Of a stretch of DNA of 64,000 bases, positions 1 to 60,946 are shown piece after piece. The DNA is from Cyanophora paradoxa CCMP329. Its lineage: Eukaryota > Plantae > Glaucophyta. The stretch is taken from positions 186,001 through 250,000 of the forward strand of contig QPMI01000524.1 of the NCBI GenBank assembly GCA_004431415.1, written 5' to 3'. The notes under the pieces were generated by a model, which searched no databases, was not told the DNA's origin, and saw nothing but the letters and a program-made list of their open reading frames with translations. The translations under genes were made by a program, and so were the position numbers. The first letter of the stretch is position 1, and each line of letters starts with the position of its first letter.

Positions 1-3000
1 TCGCGTGAGGATGCGAGGGCGCGCGGAAAGTTGTGCAGGTCCGTCCAGGATCGAATTTTCGGGGTGGGCTGGGTCCTCGCGGCCCGGCGCACCTGCAAAG
101 CGTGCGGAAAGCTTCTTCTACATCTCAGATGGTTATGCTATTGTTCCGCGCATGCGCCGCGGCGTGGGCGCGCGGAAAGATGTCCGGGGCTGTGCAGGAT
201 CGAATTTTTGCCGTCGGGTACCTTCCTGCGCTGTTCGGCATCCGAAAAGCGGATTTCGGGGGTGCGCAGGCCCTGCTATGTCTATGCGCGCCGGTACGCA
301 TCGATTGCGCGCGTCGCGGGACCGGGCGGGACCGGCCGGATCAAATGTTCGGCCGATTCTTCGGACTGGAGAATCGAGGGCGCCCGAAATCGAGCTTGCG
401 GCGATGCGCTCGCCCTCGCCCGTCATTCTGTATCGTTCTGGGGCGTCCCTGGCGCGATTTCGTCGCGGGACCGGGCGGGACCGGGTCCCACGTCCTGACT
501 TGGACTGCATTTGTCGGAGGTTAAGTACCGGAATTGATTCAGAGGGAAATTCGATTTTCGCGGGACGCCTACGGGAGAGCGGTCGTCTTAGGGGAGCCAC
601 GACGCTAAAAATGGATCTAGAGAGGTTTGTGGGGGTTCGGGTGGGTGTGTTACCAGCAGCAATCGCGTCCGTGTCGAGGCAGAATTAATAATTCTGGCTC
701 GAGGGAGTGCGACACGGAAATTATTTGGCACGGGGGATCTCGAGTGGAAACAAGATCCGTGCTCCTGCGGAGCACTAAGTACGGCGAAGCCTCGCGGACG
801 CCCTCGCGGCTGTCACAGTAGGCCTATAGGGCACTGGCCAGCGGCCTGGCCGATCGCGAACAGCTTTCTGGCTGGATCCGGAAGCTGGCTGGCTGACGGC
901 CAGTACTTGTCCAGCGCTGGCCGGCTAGAGGAATATAACTAGAGGAATATTAATGTACTGAGGAAATAAAGGGATGCCGGAGCAAGTTGAGAGGAGATGA
1001 ATTATATAATATTGTTGAGAGGGAGGCCCGGGAGGGGCGAGATTCTCAAGGCCAGACGCATGCACAGAGCTTGCGAATCGCTTAAACAGAATCTTGAATG
1101 CATATAGCATCGATGTGCGGGGCTGCGGAGGCGAGGGCACGCGGAAAGCTTTGCAGGCCTGGCCAGGATCGAATTTTCGGGGTCGGCTGGATTCTCGCGC
1201 CCTGTCGCATCTTTATGCGCATCTTTAGAGTTCGCGATTCAGCTGGATTCATCTTTTATTTCGGGGTCGGCTGGATTCATGCGCATCTTTAGAGTTCGCG
1301 AAAAGCTTAAGAAAGATCTCAAATTACTAGTGTAGGGATGCGCACGCGTGAGGATGCGAGGGCGCGCGGAAAGCTGTGCAGGTCCGTCCAGGATCGAATT
1401 TTCGGCGTCGGCTGGGTCCTCGCGGCCCGGCACATCTGCAATGCGTGCGGAAGGCTTTGTCTACATCTGAAATGCTTATCATATTGTTCCGCGCATGCGC
1501 CGCGGCGTTGGCGCACGGAAAGATGTCCGGGTCTGTTCAGAATCGATTTTTTGCCGTCGGCTGGGTTCTCGTGCTCTTCCGCGTCTTCAAAGCTTGTGGA
1601 AGGCTTCAATAAAATGTGAAATGAATATTGTAGCGATGCGCATGCGCGAGGATGCGAGGGCGCAAGAACAGGTCTTCAGGTCTGTAGAGGATCGAATTTT
1701 CGGGGTCGGCTGGGTCCTCGTGGCCCGGCGCATTTAGAGACCGTGCAAAAGGCTTCTCCTACATCTCAAATGCTTATGCTATCGATCCGCGCATGCGCCG
1801 CGGCGTCGGCGCGCGGAAAGTTGCCCGGGACTGTGCAGGATCGATTTTTTGCCGTCGGGAGCCTTCCTGCGCTGCTCTGGCTCCGAAAAGCGGATTTCGG
1901 GGGTGCGCAGGCCCTGCTATGTCTATGCGCGCCGGTACGCATCGATTGCGCGCGTCGCGGGACCGGGCGGGACCGGCCGGATCAAATGTTCGGCCGATTC
2001 TTCGGACTGGAGAATCGAGGGCGCCCGAAATCGAGCTTGCGGCGATGCGCTCGCCCTCGCCCGTCATTCTGTATCGTTCTGGGGCGTCCCTGGCGCGATT
2101 TCGTCGCGGGACCGGGCGGGACCGGGTCCCACCTTCTGACTCGGACTGTGTTTGTCGGGGGTTAAGTACCGGAATTGATCCAGAGGGAAATTCGATTTTC
2201 GCGCGACGCCCACGGGGGAGCGGTCGTCTTAGGGGAGCCAGGACGCTAAAAATGGATCTAGAGGGGTCTGTGGGGGTTCGGGCAGCTGTGTAATGTCCAT
2301 CAATCGCGTCTGTGTCGAGGCAGAATTAATAATTCTGCCTCGAGGGAGTGTGACACGGAAATTATTTAGCAGGGGGGATCTTGAGTGGAAAAAAAGGTTA
2401 AAAAAGGAATTTCGGTCGGCGGTTTTTGGGTTTGAGACAAGCCCTGGGCCCCTGCGGGTCCCAAACATCGGGCGAAGCCTCTGCCGCCCACCTTGCGCCC
2501 CCCTTGTTCATCACGGCCCGTTGTGGCTGTTGCTGGGTCGGCGGGGGAGGGAGAGGGGAGGGGAGCCCTGCTGAGAGGGAATATTATTGGGCTTGAGAAT
2601 AATATAATGAGGGGAGGAGTAGTGCTGCCAATCAGCTAGTTGTAGTTGAGCTCGAGGCCCTGAGGAAAGTGAGGGGAGAGCGTTGAGGGGAGGGGCCGAG
2701 ATTCTCGCGGCCGGGCGCATGCGCACAGCCTATAAATCGCTTAAACAGATTCTCGGATGCATGCAGGATCGATGTGCAGGGCTGCAGAGACACGGGCGCG
2801 CGGAAATATGTGCAGGTCTGTCCAGGATCGCAATTTTGGCGTCGGCTGGGTTCTCGTGCTCCGTCGCCAACACAGAGCTTGCGGAAGGCTTCTTTTAGAT
2901 CTCAAATGAATACTGTAGCGATGGGCATGGGTGAGGATGCGAGGACGCGCGGAAAGATGCACAGGTCCGTCCGTAAGGCTTCTTCTACATCTTAAATGCA

Positions 3001-6000
3001 TATACTATTGATCCGCGCATGCGCCGCAGCCTGGGCGCGCGGAAAGTTGTCCGGGGCTGTGCAGGATCGAATTTTTGCCGTCGTGCACCTTCCTGCGCTG
3101 TTCCGGCTGCGAAAAGCGGATATCTGGAGTGCGCAGGCCCTGCTATGTCTATGCGCGCCAGTACGCATCGCATGCGCGCGTCGGGGGACCGGCCGGGACC
3201 GGCTGGATCAAAATTTCGACCGAGGTTTTGGACTGGAGCGTCGAGGGCGGCCGAAATCGAGCTTGCCGCGATGGGTCACCGGGTCCGTGGGGAGCTCGAG
3301 GGAGAGGGGAGGGGAGGACTGCTGAGAGGAAATATAATTATGGGAGGAGTTGTCCTGAGAGGAGCTGTCCTTAGAGAATATAATTATGAAAATAGGAGAA
3401 TTGGTGCAGCTGAGAGAGAATATAATGAGGGGAGGAGTGGTGCTGCCAATCAACTAGCAGTAGTTGAGGTCCAGGCCCTGAGGAAATTGACAGGAGATTG
3501 TTGAGGGGACGGGCGAGGTTCTCGCGGCCAGGCGCAGAGCTTATAAATCGCTTAAACAGATTCTCGGATGCATGCAGGGTCGATGTGCAGGGCTGCAGAG
3601 GCAAGGGCGCGCGGAAATATGCGCAGGTCTGTCCAGGATCGAAAATTTGGCGTTGGCTGGGTTCTCGTGCTCTGTCGCGCCCACAGAGCTTGCGGAGGCT
3701 TCGTTTAGATCTCAAATGAATACTGTAGCGATGGGCATGGGTGAGGACGCGAGGGCGCGCGGAAAGATGCACAGGTCTGTCCAGGATCGAATTTTCGGGG
3801 TCGGCTGGGTGCCCGTGGCCCGGCGCATTTAGAGACCGTGCGAAAGGCTTCTTCTACATCTCAAATGCTTATGCTATCGTTCCGCGCATGCGCCGCGGCG
3901 TCGGCGCGCGGAAAGATGCCCGGGGCTGTGGAGGATCGAATTTCTGCTGTCGGGTACCTTCCTGCGCTGTTCCGGCTCCGAAAAGCGGATATCTGGAGTG
4001 CGCAGGCCCTGCTATGTCTATGCGCGCCAGTACGCATCGCATGCTCGCGTCGGGGGACCGGTCGGGACCGGCAGGATCAAAATTTCGGCCGAGTCTCTGG
4101 ACTGGAGCGTCGGCGGCGGCCGAAATCGAGCTTGCAGCGGTGCGCGCGCTCTTGGCTGTCATTCTGAGCGCTGTGGCGCGTCTTCGGCACGCTTTCGTCG
4201 CGGGACCGGGTCCCACTTTTTGGGGTTTCGCGATCGAGCCGGGGGTATAAATACCGGAATTGATCCGTGAGGGAAATTCGATTTTCGCGATGCCCACGGG
4301 AGAGCGATCGAATCGTCTTGGGTAAATTCTAGGGGAGCCATGAGTGCGAAAATAGATCAATGGAGCCGTGTAACTCTGTGTCACTTCGGAGATCGTTCGC
4401 CTTCATTGCGGAGGTTGCGAATCTGGACGCTCGGACCAATCGGAGTCGAGTGGAAAAAAAATAAAATCGGGCGTTCACCATCGACTTACGGACAAGATCC
4501 GTGCTCCTGCGGAGCACTAAGTTCGGCGAAGCCTCGCGGACGCCCTCGCGGCTGTCACAGTACGTGGGCGGCCAGCTGCAGCCCCGCGCACGCGCCCAGC
4601 TGCATGGCCGGGTTTCGCCGGCTTGGCAATGGGCTGGCCCGCTATAGCGAGCTCGAGGGAGAGCTGGCTGGCCAGAGAGCAATGTAATGAGGAGAGGGAA
4701 TATATAATTAATCAGGGGAGGAGTTGGACCGGTAACGCTTGCTTTTAACTGGTGGAGCAGATTGAGAGGAGATTAATTTAATATTAATAAATTGTTGGGG
4801 GGGAGTCCCGGGAGGGGCGAGTTTCTCGCAGCCAGGCGCATGCGCAGATCTAGAGCTCGCGGATCGCTTAAACAGAACCTAGAATGCATATAGCATCAAT
4901 GTGGAGGGCTGCCAGGCTGCGGAGGCGAGGGCGCGCGGAAAGCTGTGCAGGCCCGTTCAGGATCGAATTTTTGCGTCGGCTGCGTTCTCGTGCCCTGTCG
5001 CGCCCACGGAGGTTGCGGAAAGCATTTAAAAGATGTCAAATTAATATAGTAACGATGCGCTCGTGTGAGGATGCGAGGGCGCGCGGAAAGATGTTCAGGT
5101 CCGTACAGGATCGAATTTTCGGGGTCGGCTGGGTCCTCGCGGCCTGGTGCGTTTAGAGACCGTGCGGAAGTCTTCTTCTACCTCTAAAATGCTTATGCTA
5201 TTGTTCCGCGCATGCGCCGCAGCGTGGGCGCGCGGAAAGATGGCCGGGTCCGTGCAGGATCGAATTTTTGCCGTCGGCTGGGTTCTCGTGCTCTTTCGCG
5301 TCTTCGAAGTCTGTGGAAGGCTTTGATAAAATCTCAACTGAATATTGTGGCGATGCGCATGCGCGAGGACGCGAGGGCGCGCGGAAAGATGTGCAGGTCC
5401 GTGAAGGATCGAAATTTCGGGGTCGGCTGGGTCCCCGCGGCCCGGCGCATCTGTAAAGCGTGCGGAATGCTTTGTCTACATCTCAAATGCTTATGCTATC
5501 GTTCCGCGCATGCGCCGCGGCGTGGGCGCGCGGAAAGATCTCCGGGCCTGTCTAGGATCGAATTTTTGCCGTCGGGTACCTTCCTGCGCTCTTCCGGCTC
5601 CGAAAAGCGGATTTCGGGGGTGCGCAGGCGCTGCTATGTTTATGCGCGCCCGTACGCATCGATTGCGCGCGTCGCGGGACCGGCCGGAACCGGCCGGATC
5701 AAATTTTCGGACGACTCTTCGCACTGGAGCGTCGACGGCGCGCGAAATCGGGTTTGCGGCGATGCGCTCGCCCTCGCGCGTCATTCTGTATCGTTCTGGG
5801 GCGTCCCTGGCGCGATTTTGTCGCGGGACCGGGCGGGACCGGGTCCCACCTTCTGACTCGGACTGCGTTTGTCGGAGGTTAAGTATCGGAATTGATCCGG
5901 AATATTCGCGCGACGCCCACGGGAGAGCGGTCGTCTTAGGGGAGCCAGGACGCTAAAAATGGCTGTGTGGGAGTTCGGGCAGCTGTGTAGTCTAGAGCAA

Positions 6001-7422: not shown

Positions 7423-8027
7423 AACCGCGCGCGGTTGCGGGCCCCCGTTTAAAAACAAAGACCTGCCACCATCACGCCTTGAAGCCCCAAGGCCCAAGGC
7501 CACTCCTGCTCTGCAGGGACTCCCTTGTTAAATGTTAAGTTAAGGACATGAGCCCGATGGCCGGCAGCGGCGGGGCGCGCGGGGCCAGGCCTATAGCTAG
7601 GGGGACTGGGGTAGCTATAGGGGTTAGGGCGGGGGGCGTGGGGGGGGGGGGGGGGGGGGGCACTGGTAGCCACGAAGTGCTGTCACACCGGTGTGACAGC
7701 TTCGATTTCACACCTTTTGAGCCGATTTCACCCCCTTGTTGTCACCCCCTCTAGGACAACGTCGCCGCGGAGCGCTGTAAGCGCGTATATATGCTATGTT
7801 TTGCATATCTAGATAGAATCCGTTACGAGCCGATGGCCTGCTTGCGTCCCTAGCGAGATCCCGCTGTGTGATTTGCGCGCCCCTGAACGCGGCTCCCAGG
7901 CTGCGCGCGGGCTGCGGAGAGACACCCAAACGTCATCATAGATCATTACGACACAAAAGCTCACATAAGCTAGCGACGGTCGCTGCCCCCGGGGTGACGA
8001 CTTCGATTTCACACCTTTGAAGTCGAT

Positions 8028-16089: not shown

Positions 16090-17527
16090 ACTGCAAACCA
16101 GCTGCGTTCAGCCTCTGATCGACGAAGCGAACAAGCGCACGCACCCGCAGAGCTTGGCCTACCAGCTGCAGGGGAGCCACCCTTGTCCGCGTTGATCGCC
16201 ACCATCCCCGGCGTGTCTTGCGTACCGCACTCGCTCGGCGTATTAGCACACAGTTCCCCCTTCTCCAGCGTGCACGCGTACGCGTTCGACTGCAGCTGAT
16301 CATCACAGGTCGCCCCATCCAGTGTCTCTGGCCAGCTACAGTCAGCTTCCGGTCAAAGACATCGAGAAGCAACCGCACCCGGATTCTCATACTTTGCTCC
16401 AATGTGGCCTTCGTTCTCAACGTCCGGAGCCGGCAGCTGTGGCTCCGGGTCGACTGCTGTGGCGCGCGACCGGGTCAAGAATCAGACTCGTAGTTTGGAA
16501 ACGATGTAGAGAAGTGACCCCACCAGCATCCTCACTTGCTTCCATGAAGTCTTCCTCCTTAACGAACGCCGCCGGCTGCAGAGTGTCCGGGCCGACTGCA
16601 AACCAGCTGCGTTCAGCCTCTGATCGACGAAGCGAACAAGCGCACGCACCCGCAGAGCTTGGCCTACCAGCTGCAGGGGAGCCACCCTTGTCCGCGTTGA
16701 TCGCCACCATCCCCGGCGTGTCTTGCGTACCGCACTCGCTCGGCGTATTAGCACACAGTTCCCCCTTCTCCAGCGTGCACGCGTACGCGTTCGACTGCAG
16801 CTGATCATCACAGGTCGCCCCATCCAGTGTCTCTGGCCAGCTACAGTCAGCTTCCGGTCAAAGACATCGAGAAGCAACCGCACCCGGATTCTCATACTTT
16901 GCTCCAATGTGGCCTTCGTTCTCAACGTCCGGAGCCGGCAGCTGTGGCTCCGGGTCGACTGCTGTGGCGCGCGACCGGGTCAAGAATCAGACTCGTAGTT
17001 TGGAAACGATGTAGAGAAGTGACCCCACCAGCATCCTCACTTGCTTCCATGAAGTCTTCCTCCTTAACGAACGCCGCCGGCTGCAGAGTGTCCGGGCCGA
17101 CTGCAAACCAGCTGCGTTCAGCCTCTGATCGACGAAGCGAACAAGCGCACGCACCCGCAGAGCTTGGCCTACCAGCTGCAGGGGAGCCACCCTTGTCCGC
17201 GTTGATCGCCACCATCCCCGGCGTGTCTTGCGTACCGCACTCGCTCGGCGTATTAGCACACAGTTCCCCCTTCTCCAGCGTGCAAGCGTACGCGTTCGAC
17301 TGCAGCTGATCATCACAGGTCGCCCCATCCAGTGTCTCTGGCCAGCTACAGTCAGCTTCCGGTCAAAGACATCGAGAAGCAACCGCACCCGGATTCTCAT
17401 ACTTTGCTCCAATGTGGCCTTCGTTCTCGACGTCCGGCGCCGGCAGCTGTGGCTCCGGGTCGACTGCTGTGGCGCGCGACCGGGTCAAGAATCGGACTCG
17501 TAGCTTCGCAACGATGTAGAGAAGTGT
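16090..17527. repeat. Tandem repeat, 505-bp unit, ~2.85 near-identical copies
   Basis: CTGCAAACCAGCTGCGTTCAGCC at 16091, 16596 and 17101; identical ORFs recur in the ORF track. Confidence 0.95.
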
Positions 17528-17948
17528 AGCAACGATCGGACTCGTAGCTTCGCAACGATGTAGCTTCGCAAGAGGGGGGGGGGGGGGGGGGGGGGGCGGC
17601 GTCGGGGGGATATCGATCCGGACACATAGCACCAGTAGCGCAGCACTAGAGCGCTAGTGAGTTTATAATCAGCCAGCCCGGCGGCGTCGCAGCGCTCGCC
17701 TAGAACCCCAGCCAGCCCGGCGGCGTCGCAGCGCTCGCCTAGAACCCCACTGGTCGCGCTTCACTCGCCGCAGCTGCAGCAAATAAGTCGATATGCGGAA
17801 GGAAGCACCCGATACATATAAATTGACAGCGCATAGCAGCGCATGCATCTGGACGTTTCCGCCTCGTCGCTTCTGGGCAATCCGCGCTGAGCAAGCGAAA
17901 GCTCGACGAGATGCTCGAACGAGGCTGCGCGCATACAGTCCGCTGGCC

Positions 17949-23787: not shown

Positions 23788-24058
23788 TTTTTTTTTTGGA
23801 AAAGCCCCTGGGGGGCATATCAGTATATTAGTTAACGTTAGGCCAGCCCCGCGTATGTCCCCGCTGGGGGGCCAAAAAAGACGGACTGTGAACATGCTAA
23901 GGTTGCTGTGGAGCTGTGCGAGTACTACGGTGACTGCAGGTTAACGTTGGTGCGGGCCACGAAGGTGCAGATATCGATGCGGGTGGGTGGACTTGAAAGG
24001 GGGAGGTGGTAGCGGTAGTGAGGTAGCAGTATTGAGGGGGGGGCGAAGGGGGGGGGGT
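23788..24058 (-). mobile_element. Probable 5'-truncated non-LTR retroelement 3' end
   Basis: On the minus strand: C-rich tract, GC-rich stem-loop, then TTTTCC + A10. Same terminal architecture as the element ending at 27477. No clear TSD. Confidence 0.4.
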
Positions 24059-24199
24059 AGCTATAGGCCTCAGCTATATATAGGCCTCAGGCCGCGGCGG
24101 GCCGCTGCGAGCGCGGCCTGCCGGCAGGGGCCCGCAGCTATATATAGGCCTCAGGCCGCGGTGGGCCGCTGTGCGCGGGCGCGGCCTGCGGCCTGCCCG

Positions 24200-27100
24200 A
24201 CTTTCCGGTACCCGGAAAGTTCACGACCGCAAGGTCGTCGCGCCGCATAGGCGTCTCTGCTGCTCGTCAGAGCCTCTCCCGATGTCCACTGCATCTCTGG
24301 TGCGTGCCGGACCGCGGCGGTGCCCGCTGCGACGGTCGGCCGACACTTTCCCCAGATTCCCGGCATCGGCTCGCTAGGCGTCAAGCCAGGCGTGCCCGGA
24401 CAGACACCTCGCCCTGCTTCCTCATCGACGAACTCGCGCTCCTCGAGCTCGGACGACATGATGACCGATGGACCGGCCCCGCCGTCGGGACTACCAGCTC
24501 CGATCAACCCGGCGAACTCGTCGGCACAGGCCGGCTACACCGAAGTTGTCCCCTACGGCAAGACAGCCGAGTCCCGACTCCAGTCCTACAATGCGGCACT
24601 GTTCGCTTACAAGGAAGCGTGCAAGCCTTTCATTCCCGGCTGCAACTTCCAGAACCGCGACCCGTCCAAGCGGGAGATCATGCTTCACCTCGAGCAACAG
24701 CTCAAGCTACACGGCCTTGCCAGCAAGGTCGTTGTCACGGAGAACTACCCGGTGTCCAACAACTTCGCCTTCTGCGTGCGGCAGCTCGACGACAAGGCCG
24801 CCGTTTACAAGACGATAGAGGAGCTGCGAGAGCTCGACATTCGGGACCTCAACAATGACCGGTGCACGTGCTCGCACCCGTGCGCGCGCTCACCGCCTCT
24901 CACTCCACCCTTGCTCAGGATTCACTTCGAGTCCACCATTCTCATCGAGGACCGCGAGAACCCGACACTCGCGTTCCACGGCATGCCGCCTCTCTGTACG
25001 CCCTGCCGCGCTGCGGAGCCCTGCGCGCACGTGCCTTACCCTGCTGTCGCCCCTCTCTCGCAGACGGCCGCGGAGAGAAGAAAACGGACAAGCACACGCA
25101 CATCCGCCATGAGGAGTGCAAGGAAAAGGTGGCGGCGTTCATCGTCAACGCCTTCACCTCCGCGAAGCTCCCGCGTCCGGACCCGGTGGAGGTCCAGAAC
25201 GAGATCCTCGGCATCGGATATGAGGCCTCGACTTTCGCGCAAGACCGCCAGGAGCGGCTCAACGCCCGCCCGGTCCTCTTCGCTGCCATGCCTCGCAAGG
25301 TGCGCACCTGATGGCGCCCACACCCCGCGCCCGGTTTCTTAAGCTGACGAGAATCTGCTCGGGCAGTACGCGGACGTGCTCCTGGCAATGTCGAAGGACT
25401 ACGCGATCCTTGAAAGCGAGCACCCGGTCTGCATCCGCGACGTAACGGCGACCGGGGAACAACGGCTCCCGCTCAGCGAGTACCCCAAGGACGCCATCGT
25501 GCTGCTAATGACCGCCCCCAAGGGCCGCCGCCCGGACGGCTCGCTGGTGCGCGCACCGCCCCACGTGCCCGCGCATGCGTGCACCAACGCCGACGCCGGA
25601 CGGGCGCGCCCCCAGGTCGTTCACTTTCTCCGCCACTGCGGCGTGGAGAACATCCACCACTGGGAGATCTTCTACGTCGAATCGACCTCGCAGGCGCCCT
25701 TCGCCCTCCGCCTCGTCCTCCGCAACCCGGACTTCGAGCGCTACGTCAACTCTTCTTTCTTTGCTGCGCACCCGCTGGGCAACTCCCGGCCTCGCTGGCG
25801 CGTCGGCGGCCTCAACACGCTCGACATCCGCTTCCGCCTCATTCCGGCGCCCGCCGGCGAGCCTCTCGGCAACATCTGTACCTCGGTGCGCGCGACGCCC
25901 CGCCGCGTCTATGCGTCGCGAACTCGCGCACACACACTCCGTTACAGGCGTGCTGCATCATGGACGACCCGTACGGCCACCCCTGGGCGAACCGGTGGAA
26001 GTGCCCCAAGGCGCAAGACGACTTCATCAAGAAGACCGCCGACTACGCGGCCGCCAAGGCAGTGCGTGTCTGCGGCGCGCCCGCGGGCTCCGCGGTGGCG
26101 AAAGCGGCCGCCGAAGCGGCTCGGGCGGCCGCCGCGCGCTCCGCCACCGACACCTTCCGGACGGACCTCGCGCGCACGCGCGCCGCCGTCAACACCGACG
26201 CTGATGCCGACAGCGACAACGACGACCGCGCCTCCGTCGTGTCCGCCGCCTCCGTCAGCACCACGAGCAGCGCGGTCCGCCGCTTCAGCCTCCTCGACAT
26301 GCAACGCCCGGTCCACCGGCACCAGTCTCCGTCCGAGGCGAGCCCCGCGCGCCCGCCCATCGCTTTCGGAATGACCGACCCCGCTGCCCGCAGATGCGTC
26401 GCAACGAGCGCCGTGCGGCTGAGCGCGAAGCCGCCGCCGCCGCCGCTGCCGCCGGCACGATGCCGGCCCCGCCAGCCCCGCGCCAACAGACCGGCCGCGA
26501 GAGCAAGCGCCGACTCGCCCAGAAGGCCGCGGAGATCGCCGCCAACAAGGCGGCCAAACGCTACCTCAACCAGGCAGCGTAGCCCCGACGGCGGGAGGCT
26601 CCGGCTCACGGCCGCCCGGAGCTATCGAGCAGCTAGCTCCTTTCCTCTCCTGTGCAGGAGACCCTTTCTCTAGCTATCTTTCCTTTCCTTGGACAATCTT
26701 TTCTTTCAGTCGAATGAACCTTCACGTCTACAACAGTAGATTTCATGGGGCTGTGCCCCTAGCCTGGAACTGATGTTCTCCTCCCCGGGCTCAGCCCCTA
26801 ATGTGAACGCGAAGGCCTTTTTGGAAGTTTTTTGCCTTCGTCCCCTGCAATATAGATAGGCAGAGGGGGGGGGGGGGGGGGGGTTCGGAGTGGGGGGGGG
26901 CGGGGCTAGGACGAGGGTGCGCGCATAGGTAAGGACGCGCCCGCTCAGGACCCCACGGCGGCGACGGGAGCGGGAGGAGGCCAAGCTGGAGGAGACTCGA
27001 ACGCGGCGTCGGCAGGGCCCAGCCGGGCCCGTAAGGCCGAGGTTTAGGAGCTTCGGCTCCCCACGTTCGGCCAGCGACGACCTGCTCCCAACACCCGCCG

Positions 27101-27477
27101 CACCCGTGGACTTGGGCGGCGCGATTCAAGACCCAGCGCAACAATCCTGAACCTACCCTCCCATCTCCCCCTCCCCACCTCCTCTCTCAACTCCCCCCCT
27201 CACGAGCGACCCGCGGCCATGTTTTAGAACCAGCAAGAGGGCATCTAGGACCGTGTAGCTCAGCATGCCTACGCCTCCTACTTGAGGACCGGCGCATATT
27301 ATGTGTTGGGGGCGACCTGTCGGCTACAGCTTCAGCATCAGCTCGACTACGACAACAAGCTATAGAACCGAGCTCGCCCTTTTCCTCAGTGTAGCTTGGC
27401 TTTCCCAGTATCCGGTAGGCGTGGAGCGGGGGACTGCTGTCATGTGTGTACGAATGGAGCAGACTTTCCAAAAAAAA
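24200..27477 (+). mobile_element. 3.28-kb intron-containing, RT-less non-LTR-type insertion (ORF1-only, HAL1-like)
   Basis: Perfect 17-bp TSD GGCCTGCGGCCTGCCCG at 24183-24199 and 27478-27494. A8 tail at 27470-27477 preceded by a stem-loop (CTGCT..AGCAG) and ACTTTCC. 5' hairpin ACTTTCCGG-TAC-CCGGAAAGT. Confidence 0.8.
24282..26582 (+). CDS. Gag/ORF1-like protein of the insertion; at least 7 exons
   Basis: GT-AG introns at 24300-24355, 24862-24918, 24996-25063, 25300-25366, 25547-25615 and 25886-25947, plus a probable one ending at 26393. Several are needed to keep the frame or remove a stop. Knuckle-like CTSACCIMDDPYGHPWANRWKCP, then an Ala/Arg/Lys-rich tail. The ORF1 identity is inferred. 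Confidence 0.65.
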
Positions 27478-28213
27478 GGCCTGCGGCCTGCCCGGCCGCG
27501 CCGGCCGCGGCAGAGGATCATCGGATCATGAGCTAGCTATAGGCTAAGCGCTAGCGCTAGCTGCGCGCCGCGGCCAGCGCCTATATATAGCTACTAGGCT
27601 AGGCCTGCAGCTGCCGGCAGGCCCTAGGGGACCCTCGGAGGGGGTGGGCCTCCCAAATTCCCAATGCGCGCCGCCCTCTATATATAGCTAGCCCCGGCGC
27701 CCCGCGCCGCCGGGTGCCGCCCTACTAGGCTAGCCTATAGCGCTAGCCTATAGCTAGTATACGTAGCTAGCTATATAGCGCCAGCTGCATGCACTGCGGC
27801 ATTTACATGCCCCATATGCATGCGCACTGCGGCATATATATATGCATGCCGCCGGCACCGCCGCGCCGCGCCGCGCCCCCGGCCCTGCAGCCCGTGCCCC
27901 GGCCCGGCCCATCGATGTCATGATCATGATGGTAAGTATACGTATACCACCGCCGGCGGTTTGATTTGTGATTGCTTTGTTGTCCTTAATATCACTACCT
28001 ACGGGGGGTTCGCCCCACGTGCACGTGCGCGCACTGTAGTCTCTCAAAAAAAATCGTCGAGTCGGTTTGACGGTATACGTATACGGTACCCCCAGCGCTT
28101 GCTGAGGCAGCTGAGCAGCTGAGGCAGCTGAGCGACGCTTGATCGTGAGCGACAGCCGTCGCTCGCCGTGTTTTAGCGTTTAGCTAAGCCAGCTTTAGCG
28201 CTTGACCCTCATC

Positions 28214-43864: not shown

Positions 43865-44645
43865 TTTCTTGGGGCGGGTCACATCGTGGTTTGCTATGTG
43901 CCATGCCCTTTGCCAGCTTTTTCATGGTGGACAGCAGATTCTTCGGTTGTCTTGGTGATTTGTGGCTTCCCTGGATCTTTTGATCTCAGCGTTCTGTTGG
44001 TCTTCTCTTCTAGGTCGTCTTTATATCCAGCTGCAGGGCCTTTTCTAGTCTTCACTACGTACCTTCACTCTCAAAAAATAAAGTAACTTCACTCTTTGTC
44101 TCTGCGGAAAAGTAGCACTAGTACTTGTAAATAGGCTGCCTTCTAGTTCGGTCGCCGGCATCTTAGCATACATGTGTAATTCCGTGTGCAAGGTCTTACT
44201 AGCTGCCCGGCGGTCGGGTAAGGGTGCTGGACACCAATTAAATCCGACATTATCCTATCTTATTCAGTCTCGCCACTTCCCTCAATCTTGAATTCTCAGT
44301 CTCCTCAGTGCCAATATGCATAAATCTTTCATAGTTTTTATAACTTTATGCATATCTTTGCACTAACTTTATCCCAATCCTCAGTATCCCCTTGCATAAA
44401 TCTTTAACTTTCCCCCAAAGTTTCCCCCAAACTATGCATAACTTATCATAACTCTATGCATTCCTTTCATAGTAGTATAGCTAGCTCGTTTTCCCGCAAT
44501 GTACCCTCATTTAGTCCTATTTTTTGCATCGGGAACTTGCTCAATAGCATCGGGAACCTCTCGATAGCATCGGGAGCTTCACGATGCCATCGGGGATCGA
44601 TAGAAAAATAAGGTAGTGGACGCAATCGACCCCTCGCAAAATTTG

Positions 44646-45239
44646 ATGTCAACTTTTTATAAACACTGTCATCCTACGAAAATGCCTTTCACTGTTCAAT
44701 GCATCCCGTTGGCTGAAATGCCACCACTGATTCCCTATCCCATTGTGGGGCAACTTCCCGAACCTGAGACAAAGCAATGCAACCGCTGCAAGGAAACGAA
44801 GCCGGCTTGTGAGTTTGGAGAGAGGAAGCTGAAATCGGGGAACATTACTCTGCAAGCATATTGTGCCCCATGCTACAAAGTCGTTCAAGCCGAACACGTT
44901 TCTAAACGCACCTCAAAGCCAAAGCCTGAAATCGAATCTAAGACGTGCACCAATTGTGAAGAAACTAAGCCAATCTCAGAATTCCACACCAATGCTCATA
45001 CCGCGGATGGGTTCAACTCAGCATGCAAAGAGTGCAAGAATGATTATGCGAAAATGCATGCCGAATCAATGAAGATGTGCCCAAAGATTAACGTCGAATC
45101 TAAGGTCTGTTCAGCCTGCAAGATCGAAAAGCCTGCAAGTGATTATAATAAAAGAAGTACTGCCAAAGATGGTCTATATTCAAAATGTCGCAAGTGTTTC
45201 AATGAGACTCGCAAAAAGCACCCCAAGAACCAATACTAA
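44646..45239 (+). CDS. Triple zinc-ribbon protein (CxxCxxxKPxxEF..CxxC x3), nuclease-associated repeat type, with no catalytic domain seen
   Basis: CNRCKETKPACEF..YCAPC; CTNCEETKPISEF..ACKEC; CSACKIEKPASDY..KCRKC. First ATG at 44646. Confidence 0.8.
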   Translation: MSTFYKHCHPTKMPFTVQCIPLAEMPPLIPYPIVGQLPEPETKQCNRCKETKPACEFGERKLKSGNITLQAYCAPCYKVVQAEHVSKRTSKPKPEIESKTCTNCEETKPISEFHTNAHTADGFNSACKECKNDYAKMHAESMKMCPKINVESKVCSACKIEKPASDYNKRSTAKDGLYSKCRKCFNETRKKHPKNQY

Positions 45240-45433
45240 TTTTCGAGGCTGATGTTCCCTATTTTTTGTGCATCGTGATCGGCGATGCCATCGAGAAAAG
45301 TACATATGTACATATTCGAAAAATAAGGTGGTGGACACCGATACACCCATTGGAGAGAAAAGCCCCGCCCACTATGCAAGATACATGCAAACAACATGCG
45401 TCACAGCAAAATAAAGAACCCTTCTCCTCCAAT

Positions 45434-46279
45434 TTATGGTAGGGGATCGCTACCACCGATCGGATTGTATAAATTTGTTGTCAGGTATTGACCATATCTG
45501 TTAGCCGTTGCAATTGCATCGTTTCTTTCGGCATACATAATGACTGTGAATGTTCCTTGTTGTGTAGCCCGAATTATGTACTCATTATCTTGCGTATCCA
45601 AGAGAGGCAAGGAATGGAAAGCAAGACCGAAATTATCAACTGGGACTATTTGAACAGTAATACGTGGTCTTGATCCATCGGTTCTTCTACATAATGCGTA
45701 AATATCGGCAGGGAGCGTTTCAGTGTACCTATAATGATTTCCCAAAGGTTCTAATACATCCATAACAGCAGTTTGAAGGTTTATAATAATTGTATTAATT
45801 TTAATGATGTAAGGTTCATTCATACCTGGGCAATATGTCCTAATACGTGTGTTCTCATCATCGGGATTTGGTTGATCATTAACCAATAGAGGCGCTCCAA
45901 TGATACCACCCACTCTTAGACCATCACCAATGTAAGCGCCTCCCGATCTACATTTAATCGCTCCGTTTCTCGATTCATAAGCAAAGTTAGTAACCTTGTT
46001 ATCATCGTTATAACTGTCGGGATCTCCATAAAAAGCGTTAAAGTTTGCATTTGTAACAAGAAGTTTCGTAGTTTTCACGATTCCGTTATTTTTGTCACAT
46101 CTTAACTCTTTCAGTCGCAATTTATGCGTATCACCAAAAGTATTAAGAGTAGGTGCAAGTTCGGTAGATTCGAGACCATCGACATTATCGATAACAGCGT
46201 GTTGTAACACGTGATTAGCCGGCGCGGCTAATGAAAGTTGCGCTGTTAAGATACGCTCAGGTGGAGCGGGTGCCGCCAT
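45434..46279 (-). CDS. Putative virion fibre/spike protein, paralogue 4 (shared N-module + beta-rich head)
   Basis: LRLKELRCDKNNGIVKTTKLLVTN..SGGAYIGDG is shared with three neighbours. C-terminal ETLP..ITVQIVPV..GTFTVIMYAERND. Confidence 0.65.
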   Translation of the reverse strand: MAAPAPPERILTAQLSLAAPANHVLQHAVIDNVDGLESTELAPTLNTFGDTHKLRLKELRCDKNNGIVKTTKLLVTNANFNAFYGDPDSYNDDNKVTNFAYESRNGAIKCRSGGAYIGDGLRVGGIIGAPLLVNDQPNPDDENTRIRTYCPGMNEPYIIKINTIIINLQTAVMDVLEPLGNHYRYTETLPADIYALCRRTDGSRPRITVQIVPVDNFGLAFHSLPLLDTQDNEYIIRATQQGTFTVIMYAERNDAIATANRYGQYLTTNLYNPIGGSDPLP

Positions 46280-46298
46280 TTAATATATTAAAACATAA

Positions 46299-47141
46299 TT
46301 ATGGTGTGGGATCACCTGGGAACGGATCATCGTAGAAGTTATTTAGGTTGTTATCGGGATTGAGACCACGTGTAGCCGCCACAGCCGCTGGATCTGTTCG
46401 CATTCCGAAAATGAGAATATCATAACCTCCTACTTCTGTCGTCCAAACATTAAACGTAGCGGGGTTCTGGTTGTCGAATTCCACCCAACCTCTACCGCGT
46501 CCGATTCCCTGAACAAAGAAAGTATAAGCTGGTCCGATAATACCATTTTGTGAGCGACATATGGAAGCAATAGATTTAGGAATAGCAATATTTGGTAATA
46601 ACCAATTTCCCATAATTCCATCGGGTTGTGTTGCATTTACGTTATCTACCCCAACTCTGACCATTCCAAACACGTAAGGATAGTCTCCACATGGAGTGTA
46701 CATACGGATACGTTGCGGATTGTCCGCATTCTCAGGTAGAGTATCGGGAATATCGGTGACAGCAACGGAGGATGCAAGCATACCCGACACACGACAACCG
46801 CCACCAATAACAGCGCCTCCCGATCGGACAACAGCGGCGGCACGTTCTCCGTCAAAATCTAACGTTCTAATATCCACACCCCATGCGTCAGGTTGCCCAA
46901 TACCCGCGTTAAAATTCGCATTTGTTACAAGAAGCTGAGTAGTTTTAACCACTCCTGAATTCTTGTCGGCGCGTAGTTCTTTCACACGTATCATACTGTT
47001 TTTATCGAATGCATTCGTGGAATTAGCGCGTTCCGTAGATTCCACACCTCGGATTTCGTCGGCTACCTCATGTTGTCGAAAGTGAACCGCGGGTGATCCC
47101 AAAGCATAAACAGGTAATTGCACACGATTGTATTCGCCCAT
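46299..47141 (-). CDS. Putative virion fibre/spike protein, paralogue 3
   Basis: IRVKELRADKNSGVVKTTQLLVTN..SGGAVIGGG. C-terminal IAIP..YTFFVQGIG..FNV..GGYDILIFGMRTD is similar to paralogue 4. Likely ATG at 47141. Confidence 0.65.
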   Translation of the reverse strand: MGEYNRVQLPVYALGSPAVHFRQHEVADEIRGVESTERANSTNAFDKNSMIRVKELRADKNSGVVKTTQLLVTNANFNAGIGQPDAWGVDIRTLDFDGERAAAVVRSGGAVIGGGCRVSGMLASSVAVTDIPDTLPENADNPQRIRMYTPCGDYPYVFGMVRVGVDNVNATQPDGIMGNWLLPNIAIPKSIASICRSQNGIIGPAYTFFVQGIGRGRGWVEFDNQNPATFNVWTTEVGGYDILIFGMRTDPAAVAATRGLNPDNNLNNFYDDPFPGDPTP

Positions 47142-47176
47142 TGCTTCTTTTACTAAGAAGGAAAGAAAAATAATGT

Positions 47177-47443
47177 TCATTGCTCTTCTGTGACATTGTT
47201 ATACTCGATGCCTTTCTTTACAGTTCCCCTTTGGAATGCCTGTAATACAATGGCTTCCTTCGAGGTTGGTATCTGAACTCCTGCTGAAATACAAGAGTGG
47301 ATCTCTTTCTGAACAATCTCATCAATTGCAATTCTTGCTCTGTTGTGGGCAGCATTATCAATCCAATCCTGAACAGAAGCAGCACAGTATTCCATTCCCA
47401 ACTTCTCAATATCAGATAGAACTACTTGGTATATATTTGACAT
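47177..47443 (-). CDS. Small phage-type protein, possible fibre assembly chaperone
   Basis: The motif QDWIDNAAHNRARIAIDEIV..GVQIPTSKEAIVLQAF resembles small proteins I recall next to C1q-type tail fibres in marine bacteriophages (not verified). It lies directly downstream of the C1q fibres. Confidence 0.55.
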   Translation of the reverse strand: MSNIYQVVLSDIEKLGMEYCAASVQDWIDNAAHNRARIAIDEIVQKEIHSCISAGVQIPTSKEAIVLQAFQRGTVKKGIEYNNVTEEQ

Positions 47444-47464
47444 CTCTACTTAATAGAGAGAAAA

Positions 47465-48484
47465 TTATGTTATACTTAGAAGTTCACCTGTGAAAAGTGT
47501 TCTACTTGAATAACTACCTGTGGAACCTGTGACAAGTGTTACATACTCACCAGCAGGAACATTGATAATTGCACTGAGAGTAAGAGGTTTGGTTGTGATA
47601 GTGGAATTAGCTTCTACTGAAATGTTAACTCCATTGGGTAAAAGATTATTTTTCAGAAAACTTAGACTTATTGCAGCACTTGTTGTTGAATTGGTATATG
47701 CTGTAAATCTATAATCACCTGCAACAGGAGCTGTAAACCTTCCATTAGTAACATCGAATGACCCTGTATTATTTATCAAAACGGTTGTCCAATTGATCAG
47801 AGCGGCTGCACTTGTAGCAACATGAGTATATCCAAGTTGAACAGAAAATCGTGGCTGAGAAACATATTTTAAATAGCTTGAATTCAGAGTCAAACGATTG
47901 GCTTCCAGTGTTGCAAAAAGATCACTGTTACGTTTTAACAGCAGATTAACATCTGCTCCTGTATCTATTTCAGGAGTGACCACCTTGGTTGATGCTGTTA
48001 TTATTGATTCTGTGGAATTGGGAATACTAATTCCAGCATTTGCTGTTACCAATCCTGTAAATGTGCTTGTTCCTGTTATGCTTACTTGATTGGCTGTAAG
48101 GGTTCCATCAATCCTTGCCCCATCTCCAATATAAGCGCCTCCACTTCTTACTACAAGAGCTGAGTTATTGATGGTGTTGTCAAAGGTAACAATCTTTGGT
48201 GTGGTGAACCCTCCCACATCATCATAAATTGCTGAATCTGATACAATCTGACCTGATTGAACTTGGTTCTTGTTTGAGACTATTAGACCTGTGGTTCTCA
48301 CCTTGCCTGCATTTCGATCACATCGAATTTCTTTGCATCTGATCACAGAATGTTGAGAGAATGAATCGGCTCCTGTGGTCTCTGTGCAAATGAAACCTGG
48401 GGTAGCATCTGTTACTGTATGGTTGAGTTGATGCAATTTCGGCGCTGCATAACAGAAAACAGGAACAGCTATTTGTGTAGACAT
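47465..48484 (-). CDS. Fibre protein with a C-terminal C1q/TNF-like head, paralogue 2
   Basis: Shared N-module. C1q signature PRFSV..INWTTVLINNTGSFDVTNGRFTAPVAGDYRF..LSAIINVPAGEYVTL..FTGELL. Confidence 0.85.
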   Translation of the reverse strand: MSTQIAVPVFCYAAPKLHQLNHTVTDATPGFICTETTGADSFSQHSVIRCKEIRCDRNAGKVRTTGLIVSNKNQVQSGQIVSDSAIYDDVGGFTTPKIVTFDNTINNSALVVRSGGAYIGDGARIDGTLTANQVSITGTSTFTGLVTANAGISIPNSTESIITASTKVVTPEIDTGADVNLLLKRNSDLFATLEANRLTLNSSYLKYVSQPRFSVQLGYTHVATSAAALINWTTVLINNTGSFDVTNGRFTAPVAGDYRFTAYTNSTTSAAISLSFLKNNLLPNGVNISVEANSTITTKPLTLSAIINVPAGEYVTLVTGSTGSYSSRTLFTGELLSIT

Positions 48485-48506
48485 TCTTTATATTATACAA
48501 ACAATA

Positions 48507-49571
48507 TTATGTAGCACTTACCAGGTAAACCAACAAGATGTGATTGCTTGGAAAGTCAATACTACCTAACATACAGTAAATTTGAAGACTGTCTCCCATG
48601 GTGAGGGTAATAAGAGCTTCGTAGCACATCTGATTCCTGCTTGATTGACTTGCATATGAAAGAATCTGATTTGTATTGTTTCCGTTTATTCTTAGTCCAA
48701 TCTGGGTCAAGGAGGCAGTTGCAGTATTGTCTTCCGTAATTGTAAAATAGACCCTATAAACTCCTGAAACAGGGGCTGTAAATGTTGCTGGATACAGTTT
48801 GTCAAAATGACCCTCATTATTCACAAGATATGTTCCAACTGGAAAAGGAAGTGTTGGGGTGCCGGAACTAACACTTGTTCCAAAAATCTGAGCGTTTGCT
48901 TGTTGTCCTGAAATACACATTCTTGGGCAATAGCTGCGTTTAAGACCACTGTTTGTTGGAAATGTGATTGCTTTCAGATCTGTTATTGTCTTTTCGAGAG
49001 TGAAAATGATATCTCCGTTTCGTTTATAATTCACATTTGCATCTGTCCCATTATCCATCTCAGGTGCATTAACTCTTGTAGTAGCTATTCGAGTAACATA
49101 GTTAACATCTCCTGAGAGACCACCATTAAAGGTCATCAATCCTGTGAATACACTTGTCCCACTCACATTTAATTGGTTTGCTGTAACAGTTCCTGCTACA
49201 TTTGCTCCATCTCCAATGTAGGCTCCTCCACTCTTGACTACAAGAGCAGAATTATTACTTGTGTTACCAAAAGTAACTATCTGAGCTGTGGTAAATCCAC
49301 CCACATTATCATATATTGCTGAATCGGGGATTACTTGACCTGCTTGAACCTGATTTTTATTGGAGATAATAATACCTGTGGTTCTTATCTTGCCTCCATT
49401 TCGATCACATCGAATTTCTTTCACTCTCAGTATATTGCCTTCTGTGAAAGAGGTATTGCTTGATGTCTCAGTGCAAATATTTCCGGGTGTAGAGTCTATT
49501 ACCTCATGAGAGGTGCTATGAAGTGATTTTGCTGCAAGTTCATAGTTTGGGATTTCTAATAGAGAGGTCAT
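48507..49571 (-). CDS. Fibre protein with a C-terminal C1q/TNF-like head, paralogue 1
   Basis: Shared N-module, closely similar to paralogue 2. VNNEGHFD..TFTAPVSGVYRVYF..LITLTMGDSLQIY. Confidence 0.8.
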   Translation of the reverse strand: MTSLLEIPNYELAAKSLHSTSHEVIDSTPGNICTETSSNTSFTEGNILRVKEIRCDRNGGKIRTTGIIISNKNQVQAGQVIPDSAIYDNVGGFTTAQIVTFGNTSNNSALVVKSGGAYIGDGANVAGTVTANQLNVSGTSVFTGLMTFNGGLSGDVNYVTRIATTRVNAPEMDNGTDANVNYKRNGDIIFTLEKTITDLKAITFPTNSGLKRSYCPRMCISGQQANAQIFGTSVSSGTPTLPFPVGTYLVNNEGHFDKLYPATFTAPVSGVYRVYFTITEDNTATASLTQIGLRINGNNTNQILSYASQSSRNQMCYEALITLTMGDSLQIYCMLGSIDFPSNHILLVYLVSAT

Positions 49572-49596
49572 CTTTGTAATAGTGTGAGAATCTTTA

Positions 49597-52500
49597 TTAT
49601 GCTGATGCTATCCAATGGATTGCAATTTGAAGCCACTGTGGTTGAATGGTTACCCATCCTGCTGCCCAAATAACAAGATTGATTGTGGTAGAGGTTGTTG
49701 AGTTGCTTGATATTCCTATTTTATAATCGATTTCCACATTTGTTGCAGGTAGTCCCTGCAATGTTACAACAACAGATGGAGCAGATGCAAAGGCAGGACT
49801 CCAATTTAATGTAATGCTATGGTTTTGCCTTGCTGAACTGCCCCCAATTTGAGGATTCGCAATTGTCATTTCATGTCTCCCTTTTCTAATCAGGTTATCA
49901 AGCATGTATTGAGGAGCCAGCTTAGTAACCTTTGAATTGTCCCGAGGATCCATGACCCACATTTCTCTTGCATATGCATTTCCACGAACAAGTAGGGTTT
50001 TATCCTGATAGTAAGATATAGAGTTAGTAGAAAGGGTTGAATTGTGGAAATTCCAAATAACAGGAGGATCAGGCATAATATATGGGTCATAATCGAGAAA
50101 GTAACCTGATCCAATGAGAAGGTTTGCATTTGCAGTGATATTATTTGCTGTAAAGGGATCGAGGGTGGGTTTATTGGTCAGGTCATTGTAGTTGCCCGAA
50201 AATAAAGCGGGTTTGTTATAGATATCTGTATTCCAATCATGCGTATGTGCAAAATCTGTAATATCTGCTTTGACATGAGTGTGTGCAAAATCTGTAATCT
50301 CACTCTTGACATGAGTGTGTGCAAAATCTGTAATCTCACTCTTGACATGAGTGTGTGCAAAATCTGTAATCTGTGACTTTGTGTGAGTGTGTGCGAAATC
50401 TGTGATTTCAGATTTAAAATGAGTGTGAGCGAAATTCGTAATATCTGCTCTTGTGTGGGTGTGTGCAAAATCTGTTATCTGGGATTTTGTGTGAGTGTGT
50501 GCGAAATCTGTGATCTCTGCTCTTGTGTGGGTGTGTGATCTATTATTCAGATCAAGGAAGCTACCTGAATATGCAACAGGGTGTAGATTAGATGGGGTGG
50601 GTTTATTAATTAGATCATTATAATCTCCTGTGAAAGATATGATTTTCAGTTCACCTCTTCCTACATAATCAGAGGGAAGATCAATCTTAATGGGCATAAT
50701 AGCTGGATCATCTGGGATCTCATACTCACCTCCTGGATGAACAACGGGAAAGGTTTGATTACATTCAGTATGGACAAAAAAGTTGCATGCCGTTACTGTT
50801 CCATCAATAATCCCACCTGTTAGCGGAAGGTAATCCCCTGTCACACCAATATTTAAGCCTCCTATGATTACATTCAGCTCTGTTTCATCTATGTAGTTTT
50901 GGGCTTGTAGGTAATCTTCTGTTACAACTCTTGAAATATTCTCATTGTGAATGTTTTTCGCTGAGGCTCTCTGATTGATTTCTAAGACCCCCTCACCGAC
51001 TCCACCATTATAATTTGTTTTTATCCATGCGACCTCGCATTGTTTATAATCGTCCCGGTTCCCTAAAAGTGCATCTGGTAACAGTCTCTCTCTGCTGAAT
51101 ATTAATTTTGGTCTTGATCCATCCAAATCGCTCACATCAGTAACATTAATTTGGATTGCTGCGTTTTTATCATCATAGTTTGCCGGATCTGATGGTAAAG
51201 ATAATAAACCTCCTGTCATTGGGACATCATCGGCGTAGTAGTTGGTTAAGTAAATTCCCGGTTTTGTATCTTTAATTTCAATACCACCACCAAGTGGTAA
51301 TATTACATTTCTTGTGGGTGGGCGAATGTATAATTCGCCTTCCATTGTGGTTCCTGCATCTATTCCCCTGCGATTTACGTAATAATCATTTAATTGTAAT
51401 CTTTCTTCTATGTTAATATTTCTATAAAGACTTACACCATGTTTAAAATCTGTTAATACATTTCCTGCTGATGCAAACGTAGGCTGTTCGTCAATTTCGT
51501 CCCAATTATGCCTATGATCTGCTGGTGGAAATTCAGGAGGGAAGTTATCGAGATCTCCCCAATCGTGCCTATGCTCTGTGGGTGGGAATCTTTCCGGTTT
51601 GTTTAGAATGTCTTCCCATTCGTGTTCGTGGGGATCTGGTGGGAATGTGTCAGGTTTATTAATAATATCCCTCCAATCTACGGTAAAATCGAAAAATCCC
51701 GGTTGTAATCCGTCTGGTAATAACTCTTCATCTGGTATATGTGGCTGTTCGTAATCTATGTTTGGCGGGTCTAATCCATGTGGTAATAGTTGTTCATCGA
51801 AAGGTTCGTAACGATCATACAATATATGGTTAGGATCAAATCCAACCGGCAATTCTTCCACGTTCTCACATTCTTTATGTTCAAGAGGTATAACATTAAT
51901 ATCTGGTGCTAAGAGTTCCTCAGCGGGCGGAATGTACTCTGTAAATACCGGTTTGTTTCTTACTTTTTCCCAACTCACAATGTGTTGACCAAAAGCAAGG
52001 TTCTCATCTGCTGTGTATTCTCTACCGGGTTGTTTCTTTGGTGTCAGATCTGGCGGATCCCATGGGAGAGGAAATGGAACCGGAGTAGGTCCGTAATGCT
52101 CTATGATCTCTCTTATGGTCTTTTCACTAACAAGCCGTTCCCCATTTGCATAAACATTACTACCATGAATATTTCGCCATTGTCGTGTTCTAATACCAAG
52201 GTCTTTCGTATTGGTTACCAAAGGTAAAAGGTGGCGATCCATTTCGACAAGATCGGGGTGTAAATGAATAGCTACTGGTTGACTGGGGCTACTGTCGACT
52301 GTGATCGAATCTTTTTCTTTGGAAGTATCTGGTGGAAGACTGAAACCAAACAGTGCATTAGTGTTTGAATTGGTGACAATGTCCTGCGGGTAAACATTGT
52401 TGGTGTGGCGAATCTGATTCTCTTCACCATGCGGGGCTACCTGTAATATCTTGGGAATTTGTGCTATCGAATTTGATCCTTCATTATAGATTCTCAAACC

Positions 52501-52872: not shown

Positions 52873-52920
52873 CCCTGTTCATCTACCTATACTGATTTAT
52901 AAAATTCCTGATAGGTAAAG

Positions 52921-55377: not shown

Positions 55378-55406
55378 TTTATTATATGGGCATATATAAA
55401 CAAAAG

Positions 55407-56396: not shown

Positions 56397-56450
56397 AATC
56401 AAGGATCCTCGGACAATTTTTTTATTGTGTTATAGTAAAAAGCTAAAATC

Positions 56451-57842: not shown

Positions 57843-57940
57843 TCATAAATGTATGTTTTTATTACCTAAATCTGCAAAAAATGATTCCTTTTTTATCATC
57901 GATTTCTATTTAAAGGTAAGGTGTATAGGGTTAAATAACA

Positions 57941-58891: not shown

Positions 58892-58960
58892 TCTCTAAAA
58901 CCATTGTCAGTCACATTTCGTTATTTTTATCTGTCTTTATTAAGAAAGATATACAATACC

Positions 58961-59743: not shown

Positions 59744-59771
59744 AAATATCTTCCATATAAATAAAGATACA

Positions 59772-60503: not shown

Positions 60504-60539
60504 AGTCGTTCAAAAATGTTTTTTCCATGGCTAATATAA

Positions 60540-60788
60540 ATGGACGATACTATTAGTGTAATCGAATTTACCGGTGATGAACCTATTGCTGACAGATACA
60601 TAAGAAGCGTTTTAGCGAAGCAAAAACGATACAGGGAAGACCCGGTATATAGAGAGCGTGCGAAACAGCAAGCCTTAGCATCATATTACCGACGAAGAGA
60701 ACAGAAAGATGTGGTGAGGAATAGAGGGAGACCGATTAAATATGGCTGTGAATATCTGCAAGACAAAGATGAACCCGACCATATTTAG
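60540..60788 (+). CDS. Small basic protein with an AT-hook-like RGRP motif
   Basis: QKRYREDPVYRERAKQQALASYYRRR..RNRGRPIKY. Confidence 0.65.
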   Translation: MDDTISVIEFTGDEPIADRYIRSVLAKQKRYREDPVYRERAKQQALASYYRRREQKDVVRNRGRPIKYGCEYLQDKDEPDHI

Positions 60789-60946
60789 AGCGGGTCTTAA
60801 TATGAATTCCCTTGCAATAGGGACAGGTCGGCTCCATAAACGCCATTATAAGGTCAACTAATTCGTATGGGAACACGCGAGCAAGCAACAGCCTCATTCC
60901 CTTTTATTTTCTCCAATATTTAATACGTTGCTTTCTTGTAGGATCG

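Follow-up and report, generated by a model that had tools for sequence, protein, structure and literature searches.

A 3,278-bp unit (24200-27477) in a 64,000-nucleotide stretch of the genome of the glaucophyte alga Cyanophora paradoxa (contig QPMI01000524.1, positions 186,001 to 250,000; hereafter the window, by whose positions all coordinates are given) is best explained, with a rough probability of 0.6 in our estimate, as a low-copy, non-autonomous composite retroposon of this species that depends on a long interspersed nuclear element (LINE) and was copied from unspliced RNA. In its layout, an intron-bearing orphan gene with its own untranslated regions (UTRs) is fused via a poly-G tract and a spacer of about 320 nt to a LINE-type tail of about 250 nt. 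As an initial annotation of this DNA had proposed, the unit bears the footprint of target-primed reverse transcription, namely a 17-bp duplication and an A8 tail. The features of the region are as follows.

24183-24199, no strand: left copy of the 17-bp target-site duplication (exact match to 27478-27494)
24200-27477, plus strand: whole retroposed unit, 3,278 bp (bounded by the duplication and by contig breaks in DNA run X7)
24200-24254, plus strand: structured 5' end with three hairpins (folding against shuffles)
24282-26582, plus strand: gene for a 612-aa protein, with 8 exons and 7 introns (exon translations match public protein P0001)
26589-26839, plus strand: 3' UTR of the gene itself, closed by a conserved hairpin at 26811-26839 (probable RNA contigs; homologous contig L001)
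26865-26905, plus strand: poly-G tract separating the gene's 3' UTR from the 3' part (sequence; assemblies break there)
26906-27223, plus strand: low-copy spacer, part of the unit (X7 depth; a contig of probable RNA run X16)
27224-27469, plus strand: multi-copy LINE-type 3' tail ending GACTTTCC (X7 depth; contig ends in probable RNA runs X15 and X16)
27470-27477, plus strand: A8 tail (sequence)
27478-27494, no strand: right copy of the 17-bp target-site duplication (exact match to 24183-24199)

Boundaries, repeat edges and tail of the unit

An exact-match search confirmed that the 17-mer GGCCTGCGGCCTGCCCG has two occurrences in the window and no more (24183-24199 and 27478-27494), the right one lying directly 3' of the A8 run. 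The likeness of the two flanks is confined to these 17 bases and stops at the ends of the element on both sides. In a repeat comparison no part of the unit recurred elsewhere in the window, the poly-G excepted, and the unit itself was found to hold neither a long internal or terminal repeat nor any tandem structure. Terminal inverted repeats are likewise absent, the two ends (ACTTTCCGG... and ...GACTTTCC(A)8) sharing a direct 7-nt repeat. This 7-mer, ACTTTCC, occupies 24200-24206 and 27463-27469, either of which could base-pair with GGAAAGT, the second arm of the 5' hairpin.

Contigs of one DNA run (X7) and of three probable RNA runs (X15, X16 and X19, termed probable because their RNA status is a computed guess) were aligned to 24000-27700. 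In X7, the contig of the left flank ends 29 nt inside the unit, that of the right flank begins 30 nt before 27478, and at 24199 begins a contig whose depth is about threefold that of the flanks. These breaks of the 31-mer graph at the inner edges of the duplication are as expected if several copies share 24199/24200-27477 and differ outside it. The inner edges of the duplication are therefore the edges of a repeated unit whose copies have differing flanks. As a rough guide, contig depth in X7 rose from about 15-18 in the flanks to 53 at the 5' end, was about 28 across the gene body and reached 380-650 over 27224-27471. The spacer belongs with the unit, in that the X7 contig over 26925-27144 has a depth of 37.6, close to that of the 5' end, and a 94%-identical contig of X16 covers 27056-27215.

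The tail (27224-27477) stands at about 20-40 times the flank depth in X7, and past 27476 the contigs continue into several unrelated sequences, each after about 7-8 A residues. The high depth and the differing flanks beyond the A run identify the last 250 nt or so as the tail of a multi-copy retroposon. Furthermore, window positions 27204-27476 form the terminal ~273 nt of a 5,581-nt contig in X15, and 27222-27476 the terminal ~255 nt of a 5,450-nt contig in X16, with 2 mismatches in each case. The ~5.5-kb contig that shares the tail is likely the best candidate for an autonomous LINE partner, judging from the common 3' sequence. A metagenome scan with the end of the tail returned no match, and a protein-based scan returned no relative.

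The folded part of the unit lies at its 5' end. Positions 24200-24254 reach a minimum free energy of -29.3 kcal/mol (z = -4.4), with none of 200 shuffles equally stable, and the first of the three hairpins in this segment is perfect and sits at the very terminus (ACTTTCCGG-TAC-CCGGAAAGT). The third (GCGCC...GGCG) recurs upstream of the ATG in L002, a contig carrying a homologue of the gene described below, so that a 5' UTR hairpin is conserved among relatives. At the 3' end of the unit, where a stem-loop had initially been described, there is no significant structure (z = 0.39). Scans against Rfam at gathering and E-value thresholds found no ribozyme, hammerhead included. A further hairpin at 26811-26839, in the gene's 3' UTR, occurs once in the window and is kept, together with a TAGATAG motif, in the homologous contig L001. 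This conservation suggests that the gene's own 3' UTR ends near 26840-26860, and that everything from the poly-G onward, spacer and LINE tail included, was added.

Long poly-G runs occur at 7629-7660, 17573-17600 and 26865-26888, and a TAGCTATAG-like motif lies shortly upstream of each. The same motif terminates L001, at the point where the window continues into poly-G.

The intron-bearing gene and its relatives

The unit carries a single gene on the plus strand, with exons at 24282-24299, 24356-24861, 24919-24995, 25064-25299, 25367-25546, 25616-25885, 25948-26310 and 26394-26582. The initial annotation had likewise recognized one same-strand, intron-split gene, which stands, and had counted six GT-AG introns of 56-69 nt; we find seven, of 56-83 nt. 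These are located at 24300-24355 (56 nt), 24862-24918 (57), 24996-25063 (68), 25300-25366 (67), 25547-25615 (69), 25886-25947 (62) and 26311-26393 (83), and GTGCG serves as the donor in most of them. Five of the seven have lengths that are not a multiple of three, and one of the remaining two is free of stops. A word search of the window's open frame over exons 2-3 retrieved two EukProt proteins of this species, P0001 and P0002, and all exon translations of the window were found in order in P0001 (EukProt, tig00020996_g16954, 612 aa). Thus, an independent BRAKER/Augustus annotation (PMC6704402) had reached the same gene model. A C. paradoxa gene has 9.2 introns on average, their mean length being 86 bp, and LINEs account for 2.47% of the genome (PMC6704402), so that both the introns and the LINE machinery are ordinary for this organism.

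All seven introns are covered by X7 contigs, and no intron-skipping DNA contig was found among them. Moreover, variant contigs of this run carry differences within introns 4-7. The retention of introns that had been noted from the single copy in the window hence extends to every DNA contig examined.

Protein searches were made exon by exon or with P0001. A full HMMER search against 1.84 billion representatives recovered five clusters only, comprising four Cyanophora models and three open reading frames (ORFs) from Logan. The latter lie on contigs (L001-L003) from runs SRR31724264-66 with a GC content of 65-67%, and the homologues from other runs share 31-45% identity with the protein. L002 carries a whole homologue at about 31% identity, whose introns are at the same codon positions and in the same phases as introns 2-6 of the window and whose exon 3 is likewise 77 nt long; two introns are additional in L002, and intron 7 is absent from it. 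The positions of introns 2-6 are conserved in L003 as well. L001 and L003, which come from different runs, are 99.3% identical, and L001 is without exactly the 63-nt GT..AG homologue of intron 5 (L001:301-302 against L003:614-677), introns 4 and 6 being present in both. This exact 63-nt difference indicates that the homologue of intron 5 is a real intron, lost at the level of RNA or from a genomic copy.

A reverse transcriptase (RT) or endonuclease had been reported as lacking in the unit, and Pfam bears this out: neither these nor any other Pfam family was detected, whether in the exons or among the unit's remaining ORFs. The accompanying label of the gene as Gag/ORF1-like found no such backing, since Pfam, PDB (searched with the sequence and two profiles) and the full HMMER search provided no relative among RRM, CCHC, Gag or ORF1 proteins. 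Two language-model feature searches (Atlas) gave leads to CCHC and RRM clusters at 0.75-0.77, which is below the meaningful level. AlphaFold models of the gene's protein reached a predicted local distance difference test score (pLDDT) of 36.8 from the single sequence and 40.4 from a 9-row alignment, too low for fold comparison. The protein carries a conserved C-x7-H-P-x4-8-C-P motif.

Among the X7 variants listed, which may mix copies, at least 13 are exonic, 10 of these being synonymous, and at least 12 fall in 462 nt of intron; codon positions were assigned from the exon coordinates. The replacements listed (T407P, N425I and N520D) are all common to P0002. The ratio of nonsynonymous to synonymous divergence (dN/dS) computed from these variants is roughly 0.1, and by our own binomial estimate the probability of so few replacements under neutrality is about 2 in 10,000. 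This excess of silent changes shows what appears to be purifying selection on the 612-aa protein.

Other copies of the gene differ in their completeness. P0002 (tig00001182_g7484) represents a second full-length copy on another contig of the 2019 assembly, identical to P0001 at 583 of 632 aligned positions. In its gene model intron 6 is translated rather than spliced out, and the frame is restored at KCPK (residues about 429-466), which places intron 6 in the DNA of that copy too. A putative 2-nt deletion in its exon 7 is implied, as deduced from the protein alone, and this copy is probably decaying. P0004 (tig00001340_g8290) is a chimeric model, in which 52 unrelated N-terminal residues are joined to a 95%-identical part of the gene that begins six codons before exon 6 ends; it would fit a 5'-truncated copy inserted in other sequence. 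Its first 52 residues, which we take to resemble the thumb of a non-LTR (long terminal repeat) RT, found no match by word search, PDB or Pfam, and no search supports that resemblance. In X15, X16 and X19 one and the same unrelated 30-mer is joined to 26589, followed by 26589-26839 at 100% identity, a junction that would place the 3' part of the gene by itself at a further, transcribed locus. The 5'-truncated copies foreseen in the initial annotation are evidenced by P0004 and this 26589 junction. P0003 (tig00000451_g964), a paralogue with 61% identity, is missing about 95 residues of the N-terminal domain, and a word search with P0005 returned only P0005 itself. Exact look-ups with P0001, P0002 and two ORFs from the window returned nothing. 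Taken together, the family is low-copy, with about 2-3 full-length copies.

The insertion site (24040-24199 and 27495-27800) consists of intergenic, GC-rich palindromic pieces and CTAGCTATAG/TATATAGG motifs, with a tandem duplication of about 64 bp immediately left of the unit. An X7 joint connecting 24058 to 27547 was considered as an empty site and rejected, as its sides are 20 nt long and it lies in a AGCTATAGG repeat found on both flanks. Elsewhere in the window, positions 1-6000 hold an array of about 149-bp units, with 8-16 copies per family that are 60-90% alike and larger repeats interspersed. A tandem direct repeat with a spacing of 505 bp occupies 16090-17399, where three scored 300-nt copies are 100% identical. 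The block at 44000-64000, with a GC content of 39-48% and long intronless ORFs on both strands, adjoins host DNA of 50-68% GC and has the appearance of a polinton-like element or of a large DNA virus that has integrated.

Proposed mechanism and alternative explanations

Judged by the footprint, the repeat-unit edges, the shared multi-copy tail and the truncated derivatives, a full-length RNA was probably copied in unspliced form by LINE-type target-primed reverse transcription, and more than once. Under this mechanism, a full-length unspliced transcript would start at the 5' hairpin and end at the tail with its short A run, where the RT of a LINE would recognize it. Target-primed reverse transcription at a staggered nick would then yield the 17-bp duplication, and such copying would have occurred more than once. 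We infer the unspliced template, a partner RT acting in trans, and the splicing and translation of the gene. The initial annotation had also invoked mobilization in trans, and the finding that the unit's multi-copy tail also terminates ~5.5-kb contigs fits this part of the proposal.

Several points weigh against this interpretation. The other copies are known from protein models and contig breaks, so that their own duplications and tails were not seen, and a source gene with a single retrocopy would give equally sharp shared boundaries. Contig depth does not amount to a copy number, and the number of copies is low for a mobile family. The candidate partner contig is known from the shared tail only, its RT not having been seen. 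No empty-site allele was found in the contigs examined, and contigs of the three probable RNA runs do not cover the gene body, which such contigs cannot prove to be absent.

The alternative to be weighed most closely, although we consider it unlikely, is that a lineage-specific host gene of the ordinary kind underwent one or two accidental retro-duplications. A read-through pre-mRNA would have taken up the tail of a truncated downstream LINE, in a manner akin to 5' transduction, and would have been copied unspliced without any self-sustaining element. Homologues at 31-45% identity that keep intron positions and phases and similar UTR hairpins are what an old cellular gene would present, and a 3' UTR of the gene that ends ahead of the poly-G and tail, the low copy number and the dN/dS of about 0.1 agree with such a history. 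It sits less easily with the presence of the sequence at no fewer than four to five loci (P0001, P0002, P0004, the 26589 junction and P0003), two of which look 5'-truncated, amounting to more than one accident. Furthermore, a gene confined to five clusters among 1.84 billion representatives and diverging fast behaves as element-borne genes do. That the protein is instead the nucleic-acid chaperone of the element itself, which would then be a LINE derivative left with ORF1/Gag only (HAL1-like) or a Penelope-like element, we regard as improbable. Genomic copies of Penelope-like elements are known to keep introns, and the retention seen here is a trait in common with them; the language-model leads to CCHC and RRM clusters, which are sub-threshold, also speak for this view. 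Against it, Pfam, PDB and HMMER gave no link to ORF1, Gag, RRM or CCHC, no hammerhead or other ribozyme and no terminal-repeat or tandem structure was found, and the AlphaFold models (pLDDT 37 and 40) are too poor to compare.

An origin by DNA-level duplication or as a DNA transposon, with the 17-bp repeat arising by chance in repeat-rich flanks, appears very improbable. The flanks are indeed GC-rich and internally repetitive; however, the 17-mer is exact, is confined to these two sites in the window and adjoins an A run and a multi-copy retroposon tail, and its inner edges are where the assembly graph breaks. Terminal inverted repeats are lacking, and a duplication of 17 bp exceeds, to our knowledge, that made by any known DNA transposon.

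Within the interpretation as a LINE-dependent composite retroposon, a more far-reaching possibility, which we put forward tentatively and at distinctly less than even odds, is that of a long-lived Cyanophora retroelement lineage whose sole gene encodes a non-RT protein and is split by conserved introns. Spliced RNA would serve to make the protein, while unspliced RNA, with its conserved UTR hairpins and borrowed LINE tail, would serve as the template, and L001 would represent a copy made from partly spliced RNA. Were this the case, a LINE parasite would divide labour between its RNAs in the way that retroviruses do. The conserved introns are compatible with a passenger host gene as well as with a gene resident in an old element lineage. 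A family that is narrow and diverges fast, copies that are decayed or truncated, and UTR hairpins that are conserved lean toward the latter.

Significance and relation to known systems

Retroposed copies are normally intronless, because the LINE machinery meets mature cytoplasmic RNA. The copying of all seven introns, more than once, would imply either that the Cyanophora LINE enzyme reaches unspliced nuclear RNA or that the RNA escapes splicing and is exported unspliced. Such intron-complete, RNA-mediated pasting into a genome is rare. It bears on the choice of template by reverse transcriptases and on the RNA-mediated duplication of intron-containing genes, as well as on the use of intron absence to identify retrocopies. 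The unit, as a protein-coding passenger on a LINE tail in a deep-branching alga, offers a tractable case for these questions.

The closest parallels are the LINE-dependent non-autonomous retroposons (reviewed in PMC3747384), such as pairs of short interspersed nuclear elements (SINEs) and LINEs with 'stringent' 3'-end recognition and SVA-type composites. Like these, the unit has no RT, a long target duplication of the variable kind and a short A run, a 3' tail in common with what is probably a longer element, a composite build and evidence of 5' truncation. It differs from them in possessing a complete and selected 612-aa gene, with seven spliceosomal introns that are all retained, and in starting at the apparent transcription start of its own gene. 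Partially processed retrogenes, as exemplified by rodent preproinsulin I, similarly have direct repeats and an A tail flanking an intron-holding gene copy, and intron-containing retrogenes are cited as rare (PMC5470649). In the present case, however, all seven introns are kept, a LINE tail takes the place of the mRNA poly(A), and there is more than one copy. L1-type 5' transductions and chimeric retrocopies resemble the unit in combining upstream non-LINE sequence with a LINE 3' part inside one duplication, whereas here the LINE contributes only some 250-570 nt, what was transduced is an entire unspliced gene, and a further round of copying of the composite seems to have followed. With Penelope-like elements it has in common the introns kept in genomic copies and the variable target duplications, and with HAL1, an ORF1-only derivative of LINE-1, the coding of a protein, the lack of an RT and the probable dependence on a LINE. 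Yet kinship with these two, which had been named for comparison at the outset, is not supported: unlike Penelope-like elements, the unit has no RT or GIY-YIG gene, pseudo-LTR or hammerhead, and its intron-bearing gene is not an RT, and unlike that of HAL1, its protein is without similarity to any ORF1.

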